A DNA stretch of 64,000 nt from Glycera tridactyla (lineage: Eukaryota). Shown here in pieces: positions 30,443 through 48,400 of the stretch. Position numbers and translations under genes: made by a program. The notes below the pieces were generated by a model, which worked only from the letters and a program-made list of their open reading frames with translations, was not told where the DNA came from and searched no databases. The stretch is from the NCBI GenBank assembly GCA_965644265.1, contig OZ286470.1:10416001-10480000 (forward strand), read 5' to 3'. The number at the start of each line of letters is the position of its first letter. The stretch's first letter is position 1.

Positions 30443-33400
30443 CGTGCGTGCACGCGTACGTGTGTATGTGCGTGCGTGCGTGCGTAGCCAGTTTAAATCA
30501 AATCTCTAGCAGTGTGTTTTGTTCGTAAAGATGCGAGCATCCATAATGAATGAACCAGTTCGTACTGTACCATTGCCAAGACTGGAATATTCCCCAACAA
30601 TTAGAATCGATATTTCAATCAACCACTTCTATTTTTCTCTCGCTTTAACTGTGCTCCTCATTTCTGGCTGCCTGCCAACTAGTTACCTGACTCAATCTCT
30701 ATCATATAACTAGACAAAGCCAACATCACTATGACGTCAACGTAGCGCAACTAGCACATGTTGACGTCATAATTACACCATGAGTTTGGTGTCAAACGGG
30801 GTGAACCTCCATAATTAAATGACTAATATACTAGTTCATTCAATATTGGCTCACAGAACTAACATTCAGAAGACGTGCTCACAATGCTGTGAGCGGAATG
30901 GTGTATCCCTTAATGTATTGATGAACAAACTCTCACAACAATTATAAAACAAACACTTGAAATACACCTCTATCACATGCTGTGGTCAGATTAAGGCAGA
31001 TATTCCACTGATTTCAGCTAAAATTTCTATGGGGAATAAAGTTATTTGTGAGGGTGTTATATGGGGCTTACCTTCGACTGTGAGATGTGTGGATGTGCTG
31101 TCACCCTCCACTTCACAAGTATAGTCGGCATCATCATCAGGGGCGGCATTCTTAATCTTCAGGATGCATCTGTTCTCACGCCGAGAGATCTCGAATTTAC
31201 CTGGTGTGTACTGCAAGCAAGAATCAACTATAGTCAGTCCAGGTCCTGATGAAAACGAATATAATAGATGTATAGTGATAAATATAAAGACATATTGTTA
31301 GTGCAAGCCCAGAACTGGTTTGGAACGATGGAGCGAGTGACTGGAGTCAGCCGCTGAGTGGTTGAGTGAGAGTGTGAGTGCCTGAGTGAGTGAGAAAATA
31401 AGTGAGACNNNNNNNNNNNNNNNNNNNNNNNNNNNNNNNNNNNNNNNNNNNNNNNNNNNNNNNNNNNNNNNNNNNNNNNNNNNNNNNNNNNNNNNNNNNN
31501 NNNNNNNNNNNNNNNNNNNNNNNNNNNNNNNNNNNNNNNNNNNNNNNNNNNNNNNNNNNNNNNNNNNNNNNNNNNNNNNNNNNNNNNNNNNNNNNNNNNN
31601 NNNNNNNNNNNNNNNNNNNNNNNNNNNNNNNNNNNNNNNNNNNNNNNNNNNNNNNNNNNNNNNNNNNNNNNNNNNNNNNGCCATCCGACCACGAATATGT
31701 GGGATTATTTGAAGCCCCCGCCCCTGTATCCCAAACAGGGGATGAAATAGTATGGGTTTCATATCCAATCATGCTGGCATCCTTATGCGTCCAAGATTTA
31801 CTCATTGAGCTTTTTACTTAATTTTGGATCAGGAGCATAGTTCAAGGACACCCTGACATTCTACATAAAAGCATAAATACGATCCACTTCAGATGTCAAA
31901 TTGAATGTCATTATGATTTATATTTCAGAGGAATGCAGTTGATTTTGAGACGGGTATCTACATGATCCTATGAGTCACCATGGAATACATCCGCCGTTTA
32001 CGTCATCATTCTGCGCCGAGCACGTGTTCTGATACGTCACAAACCCCCGCGCCATCTGGTGGTCAAGGTCGAGGTCGCTCATCCAAGCTCGACCTATCAC
32101 AATGGAAGAAAGAACACGTGCTTCTCTGGATGTATCCAATGGCAGACCGCGTACTATTGATCAGCGGCACCCGGAATCACCTCATGGATATCATTGATTA
32201 TATCATAATGGATCATTACAAAATAGAGAAATATCAATTATCATTTTTAGCACCTGGATCCTTCTCCCCTCTCGCTGTGAGTGATCTCGGATCGGATTCC
32301 TGGTATGGCGTATTTGTTTGTTTACCCACACAGAGTCTTACTCTCAATATAAAAGCTGGAGACATGGGGAGTTTCCCAGTCGCTGTGAGTTTAATGAGCA
32401 CTGTGCGAGAACTCAAACATCGAATCCGAGTCAAGAAGGGATTTCCAGTTCTACAACAAGAGTTGTTTTCTAGAACCCAAATCATGACGAATGAGACGTT
32501 AATCATAGATCTGGAACTCAATCAACAATCTGAGATTGTTTTACAGATACAACCAGCTCCACCCTTCTTGATTTATGTGAAGACATTCTGGGGATGCGGT
32601 TATTCTTTATTAGTGAATGCTTGCATGACAACGGAGCAGCTACGACTGGCAGTGATGAGGAAGACCATGAGTGATGGAGATACCCTTCTTCAGCATCTCT
32701 GTAAGGAGGTGGCTTACCATAATCTCATCTCAGTCCTGACTAATGGTGTCATAATGGAGGATTCCGATTGTATCAATTTGTATAGCGTTTCTAAGGGCAA
32801 CCAGTTGGAGTTGGTATCAACAGCAGAACAACGGGGCGAATGTGATCACACCATTACCCTGAGACAAGAGGGACACTGTTCCAAAGTAGAACAATGTCAT
32901 CGGTATTCTATCAACCCAATATCCATCAAAGTTGCTAAGTATGATACCTGGTTTATTGTAGCTCTCAAACTACACTGTCTGACCGGGATACCGGTTGATA
33001 AAATTCATTTATATCTCCAACATGATCCTATTGATATGGCCCGTAGTGTTGGTACACTAATAAAGACTAAACTAGCACTTGTGACCTTTACAATGGAAGA
33101 GGAAGGAAGTCTAGATGGGAGGATAACTGCCAATGTGGCGCTTTTGTATGGTCTTACTGAGAAGGTGGTCTGTAATATAAACGATACTGCGCAGCATGTC
33201 ATGCATAAACTACGCAAAAATACCGGAATCGATACGAAACATCATCATCTGTTACATCGTAATGTTAGATTGTTACCGACATCACGCTTGAAAGAAAATA
33301 ATATTCATTCGAGTACCCGTCTTCATTTGATGCTGGTGGATTTTCCAATTCATGTCAGCCATGGTAAAAAGTGCGTAGTAATACAGACAAACATGAGTGA

Positions 33401-36400
33401 AAAGGTTACTGATCTCAGAGACCGAATTAGAGTTGCAATTCCGTGCCTGCCCAAAAGATGTCGCTTTATACTGGGCGGAGAAAATGTGAATCTCGACGGT
33501 TGCCATCTAGTGGCGGAAACGCGAATCTTCATTGACTGTCAACTTCACGCATTGTCAACAACACTTGCATGCCCTGTTTTGCATCTCGTCGTTGGCAAGG
33601 AAACTATGCCAATTCCCACTAAATTACACATGGACCCCCTACATCTGAGCCAACTGGAGAAATTTGTCGGTAAGAAGAACATAGCTCATATGATGCTGCA
33701 TTGTCTTCACTGGTTTCTACGTTGGAGATATCCCGGTACGTACAAGAGGAAAGGACGTCCTATTCCCCTGAAGGACGATAAGGCCCTTCAGCAGGCGGAG
33801 AAGACCTCACCGGTGACCTATCTGGCACCGTTTGAAGGCACTTCGAGGGCCTCCACGGAGAGACCGCCGGTTGCATCGTTGAGCAGACAGAGTAGCTTGC
33901 CAGCGATTCTTTCTGCTAAAACTGATCGATTGCATACGGAATTGAGCGATCTCAGATCGGACGAGTCACAAAAGGAAGGCAAACCTTCCGTCCGATTTGC
34001 GCTACCAAGTGCCATGAAGCAGTAATACAGATGTGGTGAGTGAGTGTGTGGGTGAGTGAGTGAGTGAGTGAGTGAGTGAATGAGGAAATGGGTGAGTGAT
34101 TGATCGATTTCTATTGAAAAGCATGTACAGTCTAACCTGCTCTAAAGACCACCTCTCAAGAAAGACCAGATGCAATCGTGGTAATAACATCAAATGTAAA
34201 TGACTTCTCTACAAAGACCACCCCCTCTATAAAGGCCACTTTATAATGTGACCGAATGCGGTCTTTATAGACAGGTTTGACTGTATCAGCCCAATTGATT
34301 ACATATGCCACGTGTTCCCGCTCGACAAATGCTGAATATTCTCCCCCCGCAGGCAACACTTCTGAATTTCCAGACCAGATGATTGGAGAACAAAGAGATT
34401 GTCAAGTATAAATAACAGACAGTTCAGACACACCTCTCCAAATTCCACATATACCTGATGATCATAACGATGACACAAGCGAATCAGAGACAGCCACAGC
34501 AGTTCCCTAACTCAGGTAAGTCGTTGTACAGCTATGAGAAGAGTTTCTCCACGGATGGGTGAGCGTGATTGGCTGGGGTCACCATTTACTACCTGGACTT
34601 TTATCATGCCATCAATATTTAGGATTTGCAGGTTCACATGGGTGTGACTTCAGTGTCGAGGTTGCTGAGCGAACGAACTAATCCATCAATTTGGTTTCCA
34701 TGATAATAGCGATCAAATCCATTCCATCATCAGGTCAGAAATTATCAATATCAGATAATAAAAGATGAACTCACCTCAATGGGTTCTCCATTCTTGAACC
34801 ACTTGACCTGAGGGTCAGGGTCATTGATCATACACTCCAGTTGTACATCCTTGTGTTGCTTCACCTTCACCGACTTGAGCAACTTCTGTGTGAAGAAGAA
34901 CTGTACTTTCTTCTCTGTTAGCATTAGGGGAAAAAAGAATAGATGAGTAAAAATCAGTTGTCTCTCGTCTGTGATATCAAGTATGAAAACGATTGAAATG
35001 ATAGGATGTTGTTGTGCTTGCTTCATTATTTTACCAAGAGATTATCCACCTACTCGTAGATAGCCTATGCTAATTTGGAATCTTTTCAAGCTGGGTGCTA
35101 GAGNNNNNNNNNNNNNNNNNNNNNNNNNNNNNNNNNNNNNNNNNNNNNNNNNNNNNNNNNNNNNNNNNNNNNNNNNNNNNNNNNNNNNNNNNNNNNNNNN
35201 NNNNNNNNNNNNNNNNNNNNNNNNNNNNNNNNNNNNNNNNNNNNNNNNNNNNTAGGTGGTTGGGTGAATAGAGTTTGAGTGGATGAAGGGATAGAGGGAA
35301 AGATGGAGAAGTGGATGGACGGATAGATAGAGACAGACAGAGAGAGAGACGCACACAGATGCAGAGATCCAGAAAGAGAGAAGGAGAAGAGAACAATAAT
35401 GAGGTAATTGAGAGAATGGATGCAGCTAATTCAAATAATGGCTAGTCTGTGCTGAATCATTGATGTCAGGTTACCATGACGAGTGCTGATGCCAGAGTGA
35501 AGTAGCTACCTCCTCCTCCATAGCATGATGTGGTGAATGACATCTCTCTACCTGGTCTCTGGTGATGCTTCACATCCCACACTTCACATGCAACACTCAG
35601 CAACACACATCACATATAGCAATTAAGTTTGCCACTATGGACAATGTGCTCAGTATATCCCCCTGAGGTTATTGAAAGACGAACCATGTCTTCTCATTCA
35701 GTAACCTCAGGGGGGTATACGAGCTTCCTATGGCAGAGTGATATCAAGAGTCCGAACCATTTTGTGCACTTCGTATACCGCCTGGGGGACAAGGGCTAAG
35801 GCTTCAGGGTAGGTTCCTCACCCTCTGTCCTCAGGCGATATTAAGAAGTGCATAGTACGGGCTCTCGATGTCACCGTGCCATAGAAAGTCCGTACGCACA
35901 ACCATGTATATGCTAAGATCGAAAATTGACGTTTACCACTCTGAGATCTGTGACTGATCTAGTCAGCCAAAGAAAGCAGTCCAATGAGGACTATCTGCGT
36001 CAGAATTCCGGTTAATTTACACACTGCTCAATTTTTGTCATTTATCCTTGGATTAGCAGATAAGCATGGTTGTGCGTTTTTCACATTTGTTCGCTGGCAA
36101 GCTGGTATATCAAATCTTGCATGCACATATATGTTGCAATACATTGAAACATGCAATAATGTTATATGCATCGAAGACGTAAAGTTCTGACATGATACAT
36201 TTCAATCATCTCATGGTTTATATAAAATCCAATTAAGTGTGCACGCATTGCAATGAATACAGGAAATATCTCAAAGACATGTGAAGATGCATGGAATATA
36301 AGATACTGCCTACAATACTATTGATACTGAATGACACAGCGGTATCTCATATGTATCATCGAAATAGCGTATGGATATATATTGAGAATTCCTCATAGAT

Positions 36401-42400: not shown

Positions 42401-45400
42401 AAATGTGTACATCTGAAACAACATAAGGACATCCATATGAGGACAGATTCGGTCCTCAGAATAGGTGTAATATGGAAGGTGAGATTTGTATAGTTGTGAT
42501 TATGCCAGGGTGAATATTAACTAGTGATGGCTTTTGTGAAGGCAATTTATGGAGAAGGTATCTCAAATACCAGCTTGTTGTTATGTATGTATCGTGCCTA
42601 TAAGCACACCAATACAAACATATACAGGAACACCACATCCTTTTACATCGCTTCACATTTTGAGAGATAAACTCTGGTGTGGAGGTCTTGAGTATAGATA
42701 GCATATTTGATCAATTGCAGAGGCACAGCTCTGAAGAGAAATCTGATCTGGATCGCTTCAGCTATAAATTTCAAGAGAATTTCAAGAAAATTTCAAGGGG
42801 GACTATCAATCACAACTCTTGTGATCAATGAGGCTCACCCGAAATCACAGAAGATACTGGAGGAGCGTATGGTCATGGGATTTTCATGGACTTCTTCCCA
42901 AAGATAATACTGTAGATGACTCTTCTACCATTAGATGATCGATGATGTGGATCACTTTTGACATTGATATGATATATTTTGGTGTCTTGGGATGATCCTA
43001 TGTGATTATTTTGACCAATAATATCATGTTTTGATCTGCAGTAGTGAGATACTCCCATGTACATTTCATCCGATGAGAATAGTGGGAATATCGTAATTCA
43101 ATCATGAACACCTGGGAAATGGGGAAAATGTGACCAACTGGATGGCCTACAATATCCATATGCTGATTCGCTTCAAATAACATGGCCTTTTTACATATAG
43201 ATGAACCAGTGGGAAACAAATATCATTCACATCTCAGAAATATATGTAAGCATTCAATAGCGTCATAAGTAGTATAATTCATCACAAGCTTTCACAGACA
43301 CATCTCTCAGTTCACACACTTAGCAAAAACGTGCGTCTGACTCCCATGCATTGATACAGTTCAGATACAAAAGAAAAATAAAATACATCAACCTCAAGCT
43401 CTCCAGAGAGGTAACAAATTAGTACATTTGGTAGAGTAAAACATTGAACGATGAATCCATACATCGGCACATATCAGTGTCATTTTCTTGTATTCATACT
43501 TGATGTGTTACTATCACTTTTATTTTCAATTACAGTACAATGAGATTGCAAAATCCTCTGTCGACATGGTATCCAGTAAACAGTAAGCATCTAATTCTCA
43601 CAAATATCTTCAATGGTAGTACCTGAAATGGTTATGTAATTCTTTCAGGAAAAATATGAAACTTCATATAAATCACCCAAATCATCAAATACAGTGAAAC
43701 CTCTATTAAACAACCACTGTATTCAACATCACTTGTCTTAAGCAGCCGGTTTCCGATTTCCCACTAGAGTATTTTTCACTGTAATTCACCTGTATTAAGC
43801 AACTACTTGAATTAAGCAACCACTTTTGGCTTCCCGAGGGTGGTTGGTGAATACAGGTTTGACTGTACAGAGTTGTGTGAATATTCACGTGATGAATTGT
43901 GAGAATTCTTCCCAGATACTGGTTCCTGATTACCAATACAACAGTACAAAGGCAACAATACGTCTTCGGTGCACAGACATGCTCAGCATGTGGGGCCCCT
44001 TTCACCATATTGCAGGTACTATACACATCACAGCACATGTCGGCAGATCCTATGATTTATTCACAGAATTTGCAAACATGGACAACAGATGTGTACACCT
44101 TTTGATTTTCAGTGATTACGGCCCCAGAAATACAGAAATCATGCATGAATCACATCATTTTGGAATTGGAAAGATGATAATTACTACGGCGGGCATACTT
44201 TCCCTGACAAATCTAGCTCTTCAATTGATACTGGATATTTCATATTATATTATCGTGCCTGCAATAAGTGTTACAGGATGATGAGCATTTGCACAGGTAT
44301 ATTCTGTGGTCTTGTACCATTTAGATCTCGATATTTGGTGGTACTATCGTAATTCATATAATTGTGCAAATATCTATATGATCATGCGCCATCATGTCCT
44401 CCCTACAGACTAATAAAAAGTATTTATCTGTTGTGTCATTCAGCCATGTAATATGGATTTTGCTCACATCTGAAAATCACAGGAATGCAATTTATGATAG
44501 CGATGATGATATCATGCAAATATGCATAGTCATCATGGCTGCAGCTATTTCATGCAAATTCGAAATATGGCTGTGGGCATTCACATAGGCTGAATAATCA
44601 TTACTATCAATCAAACACAGTGTGTATTTCCTTGTCCTATAGCACAAATCTGTGAAACCACATAAGTTACACACTATAAGAATGAAATCTTTATATCCTA
44701 ATAAGATGTAAGATATAATATAAGATATAATGTATTTTTTCTCACTATTCATTTTATTAGTACGATGCATCCATGTATCAACTATGGGTGGAGTGTGCAT
44801 GTGTATGATTGATCGGCTTGGACCTCAGCAATGGTCAGACATGAAATTCTCAAACTTGTCCATGAAAAACGCTGGCACATCGCTGGTCTGTATATGTAAT
44901 CGAGCCATTGAGTCACAGTGCTCACCTCAAAAGCCGCAATCTGCTCCGAAGGTCACACCCCAGGATGGTGGTAAGAAAGGACTGATTGTAACACTAAATA
45001 TAGGCGCACTCTGTAGCCAGGGCCTGGACATTTTCTTTGGCCAACCAGGTAGCTTTGCATGCATATACATTTGTTACCACACCAAGATAGCGTAAAGGCA
45101 CACTCCTTCCTGCAAGTGCAAGCTCATACTAAGCCAATGCGCCAGTTGACAGATTGGGTGCAGGGATACATCAGCGAATAGACATGCACATATGCATCAC
45201 ACATAGTTTCACACACTGTACCGGCACTTCAGCCACCAGAGACCAGGTATTGTGATTCCCTAGACAGATGTAGTCTAACATGCGTCAGACCGATGCTAAA
45301 TCCTTTGGCATACATCTAATGACTATCTAGNNNNNNNNNNNNNNNNNNNNNNNNNNNNNNNNNNNNNNNNNNNNNNNNNNNNNNNNNNNNNNNNNNNNNN

Positions 45401-48400
45401 NNNNNNNNNNNNNNNNNNNNNNNNNNNNNNNNNNNNNNNNNNNNNNNNNNNNNNNNNNNNNNNNNNNNNNNNNNNNNNNNNNNNNNNNNNNNNNNNNNNN
45501 NNNNNNNNNNNNNNNNNNNNNNNNNNNNNNNNNNNNNNNNNNNNNNNNNNNNNNNNNNNNNNNNNNNNNNNNNNNNNNNNNNNNNNNNNNNNNNNNNNNN
45601 NNNNNNNNNNNNNNNNNNNNNNNNNNNNNNNNNNNNNNNNNNNNNTGGTATTCAAAGAGAGCATTCGCATAACAGTGTGAGAGGGACAGAGATAGAAAGA
45701 GAAGTAGAAAACTTGAGAAAGAAAAGGGATGAAAATGGTGAGAAGTAATCCGACGTAGAATTGATCAAGAGGAGCAGAAATGAAACCAAATTCACTGAGA
45801 AAGAAAGAAAATGGAGCTACTGCCTTTTCAAAGAAGAATTGACGACCCATGCTTTCTCTAGATAGACTTCTAACGGTCTCAACAGACATCAAGGTACCTA
45901 TGATCTATGTAGTATCAGGCAAATCATGCAGAACCCATCACAGTCAATACTCGAACTGCCCTCCTATACGCAAGAGATGGTGTACGTAAAACATGTGTCA
46001 AAGACATATCTTCTGGTTGAGAGTAATTGTAAATGTACATTGGTTGACAGAACCCTCTGATAGTTTAAGAGTCTCAGGCAATTGAGGGACATTCCTCATC
46101 TAAGACATCCACATACACACATGCACACACGCAAAGACCCCCACACACTAACATAACACACATACATACACACCTACATAATTCATTCATTTAGACACTC
46201 TCGGACAAACATTTGCGCACGCAGACATGCACAGACGATAACATTCAACCAGTGAAATTACCCCCCTTACCGTTAGTGTCTTTCACGAGAAATCTTTTTT
46301 TAAATTGATTGCCTTAAATATACTCTCTGTGGAAAAGTTCAGATAAAGGGCGATGAGAAACTGGAATTTTCCAGCTCACAAAACATCCAAATTTCGACAT
46401 TATGGAAATACTCGAGCCTAACAAATTTATTGAGGAGTTAGGCTCACAAGTTATTATATAAGAGATGTCAAGCTGATCATTTTATCATGTTACCCATTTC
46501 AACTCACTCATCGGATCATTCATCTACATTGCAAATCTCCATCATTACTAGCCATTGTTTTTTTTTCTGTATTTGATCATCATTCTGAAGATGTACACGT
46601 TTATCATGCATGTAGATGTTATACAGATGTTGGAGCAGATAACACCAACAGTGTACTCCAAGAGTGAACCACCAGTGTGTTGTGGTGAACTGCACTTTTG
46701 TTCCAAGTGTGCTTACTTCCAGTGTGTTATTCTGCCACACTATCATGAAGACTCAAGGAAATTCATTCCGAAAATATCAAGGAATTTTAGAAGCTCATGA
46801 GTCTTCGTTCTTTCAGCCTGTGATACAACCCATGTGGTCACATACTCTTTTGCATGTAGTACAATATTCATCGGATAACTCCCATGGATGACGTCGATTC
46901 AATCATGCTCATTTCACTGTGAGTATATCCGTCATGAATGTTGCTGATTAAAGGCGAGATACTCCCACAGCATGAAGACGAAAGTGTGCAAGTCACTCTC
47001 AAAGTGCATCTTAAGTAACATATATATCTTATTTATACCAATCACAGCACTCGTTGAATAAGCACAATTGACTCACAAATACACTCTCACACATCTTATC
47101 ACACCACACTTGACTAAAACGTTGGTAGAGGGGAAATCCAGCTTATAGGACCCATATTGACGTGAGGAATGATTCGTTCATCATGATGTGCATACAATAC
47201 TTATACTTAAGACAAACTTGGTGGCAGTCAAAGCCCAGTCAAGTGCAAAGCTGTCCTAGGTCAGGTCAAGAAGTGAATAGTATTGGCATTGCCCATAAGA
47301 AGAGGATAGATTATGACTCTAATGTTTCAAGAGTAGAATCATTTCACTTTGGGCTAGTTTTATTGTAATTATATGAAGCCAATCATCTTCGGTGAAGTGT
47401 ATCACATCTTTTAGAATAGTCTGGAATTGATGTATATCTATAGCACTTCACATCATAGAATAATGTCAAACATAATGTAGGTCAGTGAACATATGAATTA
47501 TTTTCTGTGAACCCATCTTCATTTGATTTCCATTCAGTTTTAGTTAACAAGCAGTGGATGTGATTAAAGTGCATATTCATGGGGCATTTCCATTGCTGAA
47601 ATCCCTGCCTATTTCTCTATCAAATTAACCATGATATGCCCACCATACCTAATGGTCAACCATAAAATCTCACCTAGGTTTCGGTGATAGATCTTTTTTA
47701 TCATGTCTGTACGTGTCCGATTGTAATTCTGTCAATTTGTTATGTACACTCTTGCATGCAAGTGGTGTTCGAGTTTTGACTATGGCAGGTGGCGGATGTC
47801 ATGACCTGATGACGTCATACACGCTACGTACCTATGACTGTCAGCCAGCAAGAGGTCTGCTTATCATCACAGGTACATGTATATTTGCCGCCATCCTCCT
47901 TCTTGATCTTGTTGATGACAATGGTGAAATTTCCATCGTTGTTAACGAACTTGTACTTCTGGCCCTGGAATACCTCCATCTTGTTCTTGGACCAGCTGAG
48001 TCTGCAGTTTGACTTCGAGAAGGCACAGGACAGTTGGTAGCTGGCATCACCCTCATTACACTCTTTGTCTTCCAGTTCACGAATCCAATGATCCTGCGGC
48101 TGTAGGTAACATAGAAGACATTCTGAGTTATTATAGAGCCCTAACATTTAATTACATTCTACTGTCTTTGTGTACATAAATGAAAAGAACAATGATCAAC
48201 CAATATAAACGTTCTAGTTTGCATATATCTTTGTTCATGACTCTGAACTTATTTTCTGACATTACAGGATCATGGTCTCGGAGAAAATCAAACTTTTCAT
48301 TACCATCAATATAACCTGTTCTACCAAGAAGGGGATAATGCTTTGGGTTCACCCAATTTAGTCTCAAATTGGGTGAAAATATATCTTAGAGACTATGCTG

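Follow-up and report, generated by a model that had tools for sequence, protein, structure and literature searches.

A 64,000-nucleotide stretch of the genome of Glycera tridactyla (NCBI GenBank assembly GCA_965644265.1, contig OZ286470.1, positions 10,416,001 to 10,480,000 of the forward strand), referred to here as the window, contains a gene nested within an intron of twitchin. The nested gene, named hexa-Ubl, is predicted to encode a protein of 681 residues built from six fused ubiquitin-like (Ubl) folds, and sequence comparisons identify it as a member of an undescribed, single-copy orthologue family that extends across Lophotrochozoa. No paper that was found describes a stand-alone protein built only from six fused Ubl folds that cannot be conjugated. 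As a whole, the evidence is best explained by a conserved non-conjugatable multi-Ubl interaction scaffold, the nesting of which has persisted mainly without a need for coupling to the host gene; this explanation is considered probable.

The hexa-Ubl coding sequence spans positions 31980–34025 of the plus strand of the window. It is an intact open reading frame (ORF) from ATG to TAA, with 681 codons plus the TAA, and the protein ends with the residues ...SAMKQ. It is the longest open frame in the 64-kb window, where the runner-up free of undetermined bases (N) encodes 189 amino acids. The coding sequence occupies 57% of a twitchin intron of 3,564 nucleotides (31211–34774, minus strand, phase 0) and is positioned on the opposite strand. 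The limits of the intron were derived from the boundaries of both flanking exons, which encode the two halves of one I-set immunoglobulin (Ig) domain and were searched exon by exon, separately and without joining. The exon with the first half of the domain (34775–34914, minus strand) matches positions 3–47 of the I-set profile with an E-value of 1e-7, and is located 749 nucleotides past the hexa-Ubl stop codon. The exon with the second half (31072–31210, minus strand) matches profile positions 45–83 and is located 769 nucleotides before the hexa-Ubl ATG, 271 of which are N. GT/AG boundaries were read from the letters at both exons. The canonical boundaries together with the split profile match indicate that the intron 31211–34774 divides one Ig domain in phase 0. 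Two runs of N, at 31409–31679 inside the host intron and at 35104–35252, were left as they are in the assembly. Further minus-strand exons in the window encode I-set and fn3 domains.

The host gene is identified as twitchin by its kinase exon. A Pfam scan of the genome located a Pkinase exon (G000:C31:10363207-10363410, minus strand) on the same strand as the Ig exons, at a distance of about 85 kb from the nested gene in the 3' direction. Among solved structures, this exon is nearest to the kinases of Aplysia twitchin (1KOB, E-value 3e-31) and Caenorhabditis elegans twitchin (2e-24), and it has weaker matches to MLCK4 (6e-18) and titin (6e-15). A scan for the kinase catalytic-loop motif in the window plus 100 kb gave no match, because the kinase exon begins just past the loop. 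Models of the host gene comprise 4,889–4,994 amino acids in two abalones and 4,803 amino acids in the nemertean Lineus. The exon halves, the GT/AG boundaries, and the kinase exon all agree with the original prediction, made from the letters of the window alone, of an intact 681-codon ORF opposite twitchin in an intron that splits an Ig domain.

The ordered core of the hexa-Ubl protein, of approximately 550 residues, is predicted to be formed by six fused beta-grasp units and a cap, and it is flanked by a disordered tail on each side. The AlphaFold model calculated from an alignment of 24 sequences has a predicted local distance difference test score (pLDDT) of 77, a predicted template modelling score (pTM) of 0.75, and order over residues 42–589. 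Six consecutive beta-beta-alpha-beta-beta units, mostly with pLDDT values of 80–97, are followed in the model by a hairpin and helical cap. A single-sequence AlphaFold prediction of the 681-residue protein reached a pLDDT of 32 and was not used; the family alignment was used instead.

The modelled protein consists of an N-terminal head, units U0 to U5, a C-terminal cap, and a C-terminal tail, all encoded on the plus strand. The head (residues 1–41; 32102 is the last position of its coding segment, which starts at 31980) is disordered, with pLDDT below 50, and does not align across the family. U0 (residues 44–117; 32109–32330) is beta-grasp-like, with a strand-strand-helix-strand-strand succession at pLDDT values of 79–93, a near-invariant W50, and an invariant P116. 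U1 (residues 118–192; 32331–32555) is a canonical ubiquitin-family domain. U2 (residues 195–282; 32562–32825) is a predicted Ubl with a helical insert, the motif V.TFWG..Y, and an invariant W204. U3 (residues 288–371; 32841–33092) is a divergent Ubl with the motif D.W..VAL.LHG, including D322 and W324. U4 (residues 379–453; 33114–33338) and U5 (residues 454–528; 33339–33563) are predicted Ubl units joined without a linker by the conserved junction L.L..FP.., and U5 carries a near-invariant G500. The cap (residues 529–590; 33564–33749) is modelled as a beta-hairpin plus helices with pLDDT values of 73–88; it contains the motif FL.W and the invariant W582, and its profile has no likeness to those of the Ubl units. 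The tail (residues 591–681; 33750–34022) is rich in serine and threonine, disordered with pLDDT below 50, and different in every member of the family.

The whole protein matches the Pfam ubiquitin family PF00240 with an E-value of 3e-16 and a score of 59.4 bits, compared to a cut-off of 25.4. When segments of the protein were searched singly, residues 123–190 alone passed the gathering score and residues 401–452 remained below it. U1 by itself scores 35.6 bits against PF00240; U4 scores 20.2 bits and also matches Rad60-SLD, both below threshold. Searched singly, U0, U2, U3, and U5 give no direct match to Pfam. However, profiles of the individual units cut from the family alignment, which are independent of the fold model, link U2, U3, U4, and U5 to U1, with hhalign probabilities of 95.7%, 72.9%, 97.4%, and 96.1%, respectively. 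Five of the predicted Ubl units are thus backed by profile comparison and the sixth, U0, by the modelled fold, which corresponds to the earlier count of about five tandem divergent units with a possible sixth at residues 44–115. Comparison of the 681-residue protein with itself by BLASTP revealed no internal repeat, indicating that the units are ancient and divergent.

Comparisons of the model with known structures lead to the same fold. The best matches found by Foldseek are linear tetra-ubiquitin (E-value 5e-23) and the HUBL region of USP7 (approximately 541 columns, 3e-15), followed by ISG15 and OASL; the first two alignments each extend over several units. In VIA-align superpositions, U1 has a Z-score of 15 and a root-mean-square deviation (rmsd) of 0.9–1.9 Å relative to the UBL of Dsk2 and ubiquitin, U4 has Z-scores of 13.8 relative to the TINCR Ubl and 12.9 relative to Rad60 SLD2, and tri-ubiquitin is aligned over residues 120–281, which correspond to the U1–U2 pair. 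Searches of the ESM Atlas by features and by shape returned generic ubiquitin clusters only, with low scores. The lack of a predicted beta-grasp fold, which had been named beforehand as a sign against the multi-Ubl reading, is not observed: the family-alignment model contains six such units.

Judging from its sequence, no unit of the hexa-Ubl protein can be released or conjugated. Pairs of glycines occur in the protein only at residues 27–28, in the disordered head, and at residues 498–499, inside U5. The ends of the units read ...LQIQP (U1), ...LELVS, ...TFTME, ...LMLVD, and ...QLHAL. A C-terminal GG is absent from all 23 relatives inspected and from the window protein, in which ...SAMKQ follows a disordered tail of about 90 residues. 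The junctions between units, such as LQP...V.TFWG and L.L..FP, are conserved, short, structured, and devoid of GG. A comparison of U1 with residues 16–68 of ubiquitin indicates that the equivalents of K27, K33, G35, P37, Q40, Q41, and L43 are kept; the positions of K48 and K63 are occupied by Thr166 and Gln182, so that both lysines are lost.

It is conceivable that the hexa-Ubl protein is a precursor or modifier that is processed at non-GG sites or conjugated by an unusual C-terminus. Such a function would have the general precedent of the tandem Ubl modifiers ISG15 and FAT10 as its only support. However, the 24 proteins have no GG at unit ends or C-termini, and they end in long disordered tails that are not conserved, whereas the junctions that would have to be cut are conserved and structured. 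Processing or conjugation of this kind is therefore highly unlikely. The absence of RGG or GG from the unit ends, the C-terminus SAMKQ, and the conclusion that the protein is neither a polyubiquitin precursor nor of the ISG15/FAT10 type, all of which had been read from the ORF before, hold: there is no relevant GG, the units are divergent, and the junctions are conserved and non-cleavable.

An exhaustive search with phmmer against 1.84 billion representative sequences identified approximately 24 relatives of 557–1,454 amino acids, with E-values from 6.5e-75 to about 1e-13 and sequence identities of 17–31%; all relatives are less than 32% identical to the window protein. Each relative aligns in a single collinear stretch that covers residues ~43–587 of the query, whereas background polyubiquitin-like matches align in many short stretches. 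The named orthologues are from Haliotis rubra (XP_046560050.1), Babylonia areolata (XP_076450548.1), Pinctada imbricata (KAK3102860.1), the nemertean Lineus longissimus (XP_064634019.1), and the annelid Dimorphilus gyrociliatus (CAD5125274.1). They are 17–20% identical to the window protein and differ from it in their tails, and the protein of Lineus is twice as long. Further named members are from H. rufescens, H. cracherodii, and H. asinina, and all the annotations are predicted and uncharacterized. The family invariants P116, K146, N171, W204, and W582 are all retained in the window protein, and the family motifs are V.TFWG..Y, D.W..VAL.LHG, L.L..FP, and FL.W. A family profile built without the window protein matches it with 416 bits, compared to at most 1 bit for shuffled sequences. 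A Pfam scan of the query and 18 relatives detected no domain outside the Ubl-clan families.

The phylogenetic tree of the family separates into two clades with 99% support. One contains the named mollusc proteins, that of Lineus, and P0009; the other contains the window protein, P0001–P0008, and the protein of Dimorphilus. The grouping with Dimorphilus agrees with a genome that is probably annelid and not molluscan. The split is taxonomic and not paralogous, because genes from both clades sit in the same intron and the gene is present in a single copy in the genome. The literature search found no publication on the family accessions, on a gene nested in twitchin, or on a stand-alone six-Ubl protein. 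The original prediction had recognised no named family for the ORF, which is consistent with the uncharacterized status of all the relatives and the lack of a paper on them; a Lophotrochozoa-wide family of about 24 orthologous members exists nevertheless.

Some proteins with tandem Ubl units were assigned to a different group. A word-index protein search with the ORF gave no match, and with the family alignment it gave only two proteins of 1,888–1,894 amino acids. These two proteins, and also P0013 and P0025, were rejected as members of the family, since hmmsearch showed them to be generic poly-Ubl repeats that match the U1 segment only. P0013, P0025, P0155, and P0156 (1,237–1,894 amino acids) contain 12–14 tandem divergent Ubl units, each of which matches the U1 segment only, and represent a different kind of poly-Ubl protein.

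The pair of abalone orthologues indicates that the hexa-Ubl gene is under strong purifying selection. Between H. rubra and H. asinina, the rate of non-synonymous substitutions (dN) is 0.0205 and that of synonymous substitutions (dS) is 0.306, which gives an omega of 0.067 over 738 codons without any indel; the surrounding intron is 83–86% identical and contains 18–40 gaps. The within-species differences among the sequences L004, L006, and L007 (1–4 synonymous and 1–2 non-synonymous) are too few to use. Protein and profile searches of the 2.04-Gb genome both found one collinear copy of the gene, the other matches being polyubiquitin genes and scattered single-unit matches. Other long open frames of approximately 700–1,180 amino acids in the genome match the family profile weakly and non-collinearly, at single Ubl units (G000:C28:76266994-76286048, C7:60891932-60892849, C28:3980422-3980667, C11:81645017-81645235, C7:651830-652078, and C4:9415690-9415938). 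They include three neighbouring frames of 744–786 amino acids on C28, and may constitute a separate set of multi-Ubl genes.

An ORF within an intron, with no apparent introns of its own and with simple repeats on its flanks, could be derived from a transposon or virus, or could be a decaying retrocopy or a chance frame, and an RVT_1 ORF is present in the same intron of the related locus L005. However, the gene has a single copy in 2.04 Gb, occupies an orthologous position across phyla, keeps the family invariants, and has a dN/dS ratio of 0.067 in the abalone pair, which is far from the value of 1 named beforehand as a sign against a functional gene. The probability that remains for such an origin is negligible. 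No element domains were found by Pfam, although terminal repeats were not specifically searched, and there is no match to a characterised family; a transposon, viral, or chance origin is thus refuted.

The position of the hexa-Ubl gene within twitchin is ancient. Related loci were queried with both Ig-half exons of the window, to see, as had been proposed beforehand, whether orthologues share the intron. In the window and at nine of the ten other genomic loci examined, the gene lies in this twitchin intron and runs opposite to its host; the exception is Dimorphilus. Both exons were detected at five of these loci. In L005, the first-half exon is 6.7 kb 3' of the Ubl stop codon (59% identity) and the second-half exon 0.8 kb 5' of the Ubl start (66%). 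In L008, the corresponding distances are about 50 nucleotides (57%) and 1.6 kb (64%). The identities of the first-half and second-half exons are 39–52% and 55–56% in H. rubra and H. asinina (L009 and L010), and 45% and 63% in Pinctada (L013). The first-half exon is located on the opposite strand about 0.4 kb 3' of the Ubl stop codon in L002 (59%), about 4.1 kb in L003 (54%), and 1.2 kb in Lineus (43%, E-value 5e-12), and in these three loci the second-half exon was not found within 10 kb. In L004, the first-half exon is about 0.57 kb 3' of the Ubl stop codon (57%) and the contig ends before the region of the second half.

The nesting is thus probably documented, on the basis of these exon matches, in Annelida (with the window taken as annelid), Mollusca (gastropods and a bivalve), and Nemertea. 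The same nest in annelids, molluscs, and a nemertean indicates that the nesting predates their split. According to palaeontology, the divergence of annelids, molluscs, and nemerteans is Cambrian or earlier. In the miniaturised genome of Dimorphilus (L011, CAJFCJ010000025.1:785553-807556), the family member is located between an annexin gene and a large EGF/Sushi gene, and no twitchin exon was found within 10 kb of it, which implies relocation of the gene or loss of the nest in this species.

Two repetitive or mobile features accompany the nest in L005. A reverse-transcriptase ORF (RVT_1, L005:16977-18272) interrupts the intron that holds the nest; it separates the Ubl gene from the first-half Ig exon, and its insertion accounts for the spacing of 6.7 kb, compared to 0.05–4 kb in other species. 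A tandem array of about 101 copies of a 76-bp unit with 93% matches (L005:1438-9129) abuts the second-half twitchin Ig exon. Each unit repeats the last ~19 codons of the exon (Y.C.VEGD.T..DLKVDG), indicating that this satellite of the next twitchin intron originated from the end of the exon.

The persistence of the nest could mean that the two genes form a functional module. In such a module, the hexa-Ubl protein would act on twitchin or the thick filament, in assembly, turnover, or catch, or antisense transcription would tune the transcription or splicing of twitchin, and selection would retain the nest. The arrangement in the same intron and on the opposite strand in three phyla is in favour of this possibility. 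Furthermore, the twitchin exon of L008 begins about 50 nucleotides past the Ubl stop codon, so that a normal 3' untranslated region must overlap it in antisense, and the window has no canonical polyadenylation signal before the twitchin exon. However, Dimorphilus keeps an intact member of the family outside twitchin, so the function of the protein does not need the nest, and a guest of an essential host gene is expected to remain in place even if the two are not coupled. A functional module is therefore possible but doubtful. A stronger version is unlikely. According to it, hexa-Ubl and twitchin would be an ancient (more than 500 million years) sense-antisense pair, and the guest would have a function bound to its host, either as a Ubl scaffold that controls how twitchin and the thick filament are assembled or turned over, or by convergent transcription that sets the output or exon use of twitchin, as the 3' end of the guest abuts a twitchin coding exon and in some species must overlap it. 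If it were true, the pair would rank among the oldest known cases of conserved regulatory gene nesting in animals.

The nest probably persists mainly because a breakpoint that removes the guest would break twitchin, with coupling to twitchin expression being possible and not needed. Conserved nesting would fit with coupling, but protection of the arrangement by the host explains it equally well. Because a freeing breakpoint breaks twitchin and the protein of Dimorphilus survives relocation, the nesting does not require functional coupling. As a rule, nested genes are of recent origin and are rapidly gained and lost. The old twitchin nest offers a clean system in which to ask whether ancient nesting reflects function or the resistance of the host to rearrangement. 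The guest gene is also of practical use in explaining how twitchin models are split. The annotation of Pinctada (GCA_033119305.1 VSWD01000005.1:8462694-8484794) divides twitchin into models of 3,403 and 1,349 amino acids at the guest-bearing intron; the split seems to be an artefact that the nested gene introduced into the annotation.

The hexa-Ubl protein may act non-covalently as a rigid multi-Ubl platform, in analogy to the five-Ubl tail of USP7. U1 would dock on receptors of ubiquitin or UBL domains, such as proteasome subunits or UBA and UIM proteins. The diverged but conserved units, with the residues W204, W324, and W582, could lock the array and offer surfaces to other partners, and both these residues and the linker-less junctions may contribute to the rigidity of the array. 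Regulation may be the role of the Ser-rich tails, which are variable. Conservation over at least three animal phyla would make the protein a natural enzyme-free multi-Ubl platform, which bears on how cells read Ubl arrays.

Several observations weigh against the scaffold. Its role is proposed from architecture and analogy, and the predicted rigidity of the array reflects a high pTM that comes from the alignment of 24 sequences. The profile of U0 has no similarity to the profiles of the other units, so its assignment as a Ubl is one of topology only. The equivalent of the I44 patch of ubiquitin is loosely alignable in U1, with a gap of one residue at I44 itself. The transcript of the hexa-Ubl gene is putative in Glycera tridactyla, and neither AATAAA nor ATTAAA is present on the plus strand from the hexa-Ubl stop codon to the twitchin exon at 34775 to mark its 3' end.

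Alternatively, the array could be a decoy or degradation tag that mimics a linear ubiquitin chain and occupies readers of chains or UBL domains, such as proteasome receptors and UBAN-like domains. Linear tetra- and tri-ubiquitin are indeed its best structural and sequence matches, and the U1–U2 pair aligns over tri-ubiquitin. However, U1 is the one unit with a sequence close to that of ubiquitin, and the family profile reaches the ubiquitins and ubiquitin chains of the PDB through the U1 segment alone. The other units carry family-specific motifs unlike the surfaces of ubiquitin, and the predicted compact assembly, with its pTM of 0.75, is unlike a flexible chain. Mimicry of ubiquitin chains is thus rather improbable, and the interaction scaffold remains the preferred explanation of the array.

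The hexa-Ubl ORF is preceded by an in-frame TGA at 31971, 9 nucleotides 5' of the ATG. An acceptor-like tttcag is present at ~31922–31927, and a 5' untranslated exon is therefore possible. The genes of the window, Lineus, and Dimorphilus are read as one exon. In contrast, the mollusc models contain an extra short 5' coding exon, which encodes residues 1–23 in Haliotis and residues ~1–8 in Pinctada, and is separated from the main exon by an intron of ~0.2–0.4 kb (L009:10001-10489 and L010:10001-10466 in Haliotis, L013:10001-10214 in Pinctada). The single-exon status of the window ORF is provisional. The window protein has no signal peptide.

The Logan contigs L006 and L007 are collinear with the genomic sequence L004, and both stop at the same base, 89 nucleotides past the stop codon. 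They were rejected as proof of transcription, as there is no polyadenylation signal or tail at the shared contig end. A minisatellite of ~22 bp, with units like TTATCATGGTGAAACTAACATG, is located just upstream of the hexa-Ubl gene in L004:1200-1500 (GCA_022702835.1), and L006 and L007 break inside it. In the window, a (GTGA)n microsatellite at 34035–34100 begins 10 nucleotides past the hexa-Ubl stop codon. Two other open frames in twitchin introns, of 151 amino acids (43826–44281, plus strand) and 189 amino acids (45323–45892, minus strand), have TTG starts and no Pfam match, and are probably chance frames.

The hexa-Ubl protein can be compared with several known systems that contain Ubl folds. 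Its U1 superimposes on the UBL of Dsk2 (related to ubiquilin) with an rmsd of 0.9 Å, a Z-score of 15.1, and 26% identity, and on the UBL of Rad23 with a Z-score of 14; Rad23 UBLs also appear among the sequence matches of U1. In contrast to the shuttle factors Rad23, Dsk2/ubiquilin, and Ddi1, the hexa-Ubl protein has no UBA domain (none at E-values up to 10) and no STI1 domain, and its ubiquitin-family domain is internal instead of N-terminal. ISG15 and FAT10 (UBD) resemble the hexa-Ubl protein in their tandem divergent Ubls, and ISG15 is among the PDB matches, with an E-value of 2e-4 in the sequence search and of 3e-11 in the fold search. ISG15 and FAT10 consist of two Ubls with a C-terminal (LR)GG for conjugation, whereas the hexa-Ubl protein has six units and a disordered tail of about 90 residues without GG.

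The HUBL region of USP7/HAUSP, and also USP40 and USP47, contains at least five divergent, non-cleavable, and non-conjugatable Ubl folds in one polypeptide, as does the hexa-Ubl protein. The Ubl array of USP7 is used for non-covalent protein binding. However, HUBL is the tail of a deubiquitinase, whereas no UCH/USP or other non-Ubl Pfam domain is present in the query and 18 relatives. The hexa-Ubl protein has six units and a helical cap, and its family has been seen only in lophotrochozoans so far. The sequence identity to HUBL is about 10% and the inter-unit geometries lie apart (rmsd ~35 Å), so the likeness is in the fold only.

Linear (Met1-linked) polyubiquitin and the UBB and UBC precursors share with the hexa-Ubl protein the head-to-tail arrangement of ubiquitin folds and provide its best match in both sequence and structure, with U1 being 20–26% identical to ubiquitin and UBLs. 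Polyubiquitin precursors are composed of near-identical repeats of 76 residues, the RGG ends of which are cut by deubiquitinases to release monomers. In contrast, the units of the hexa-Ubl protein are not similar to each other by BLAST, lack RGG or GG ends, and have lost the equivalents of K48 and K63, whereas the conserved junctions and additional elements form integral components of a single protein.

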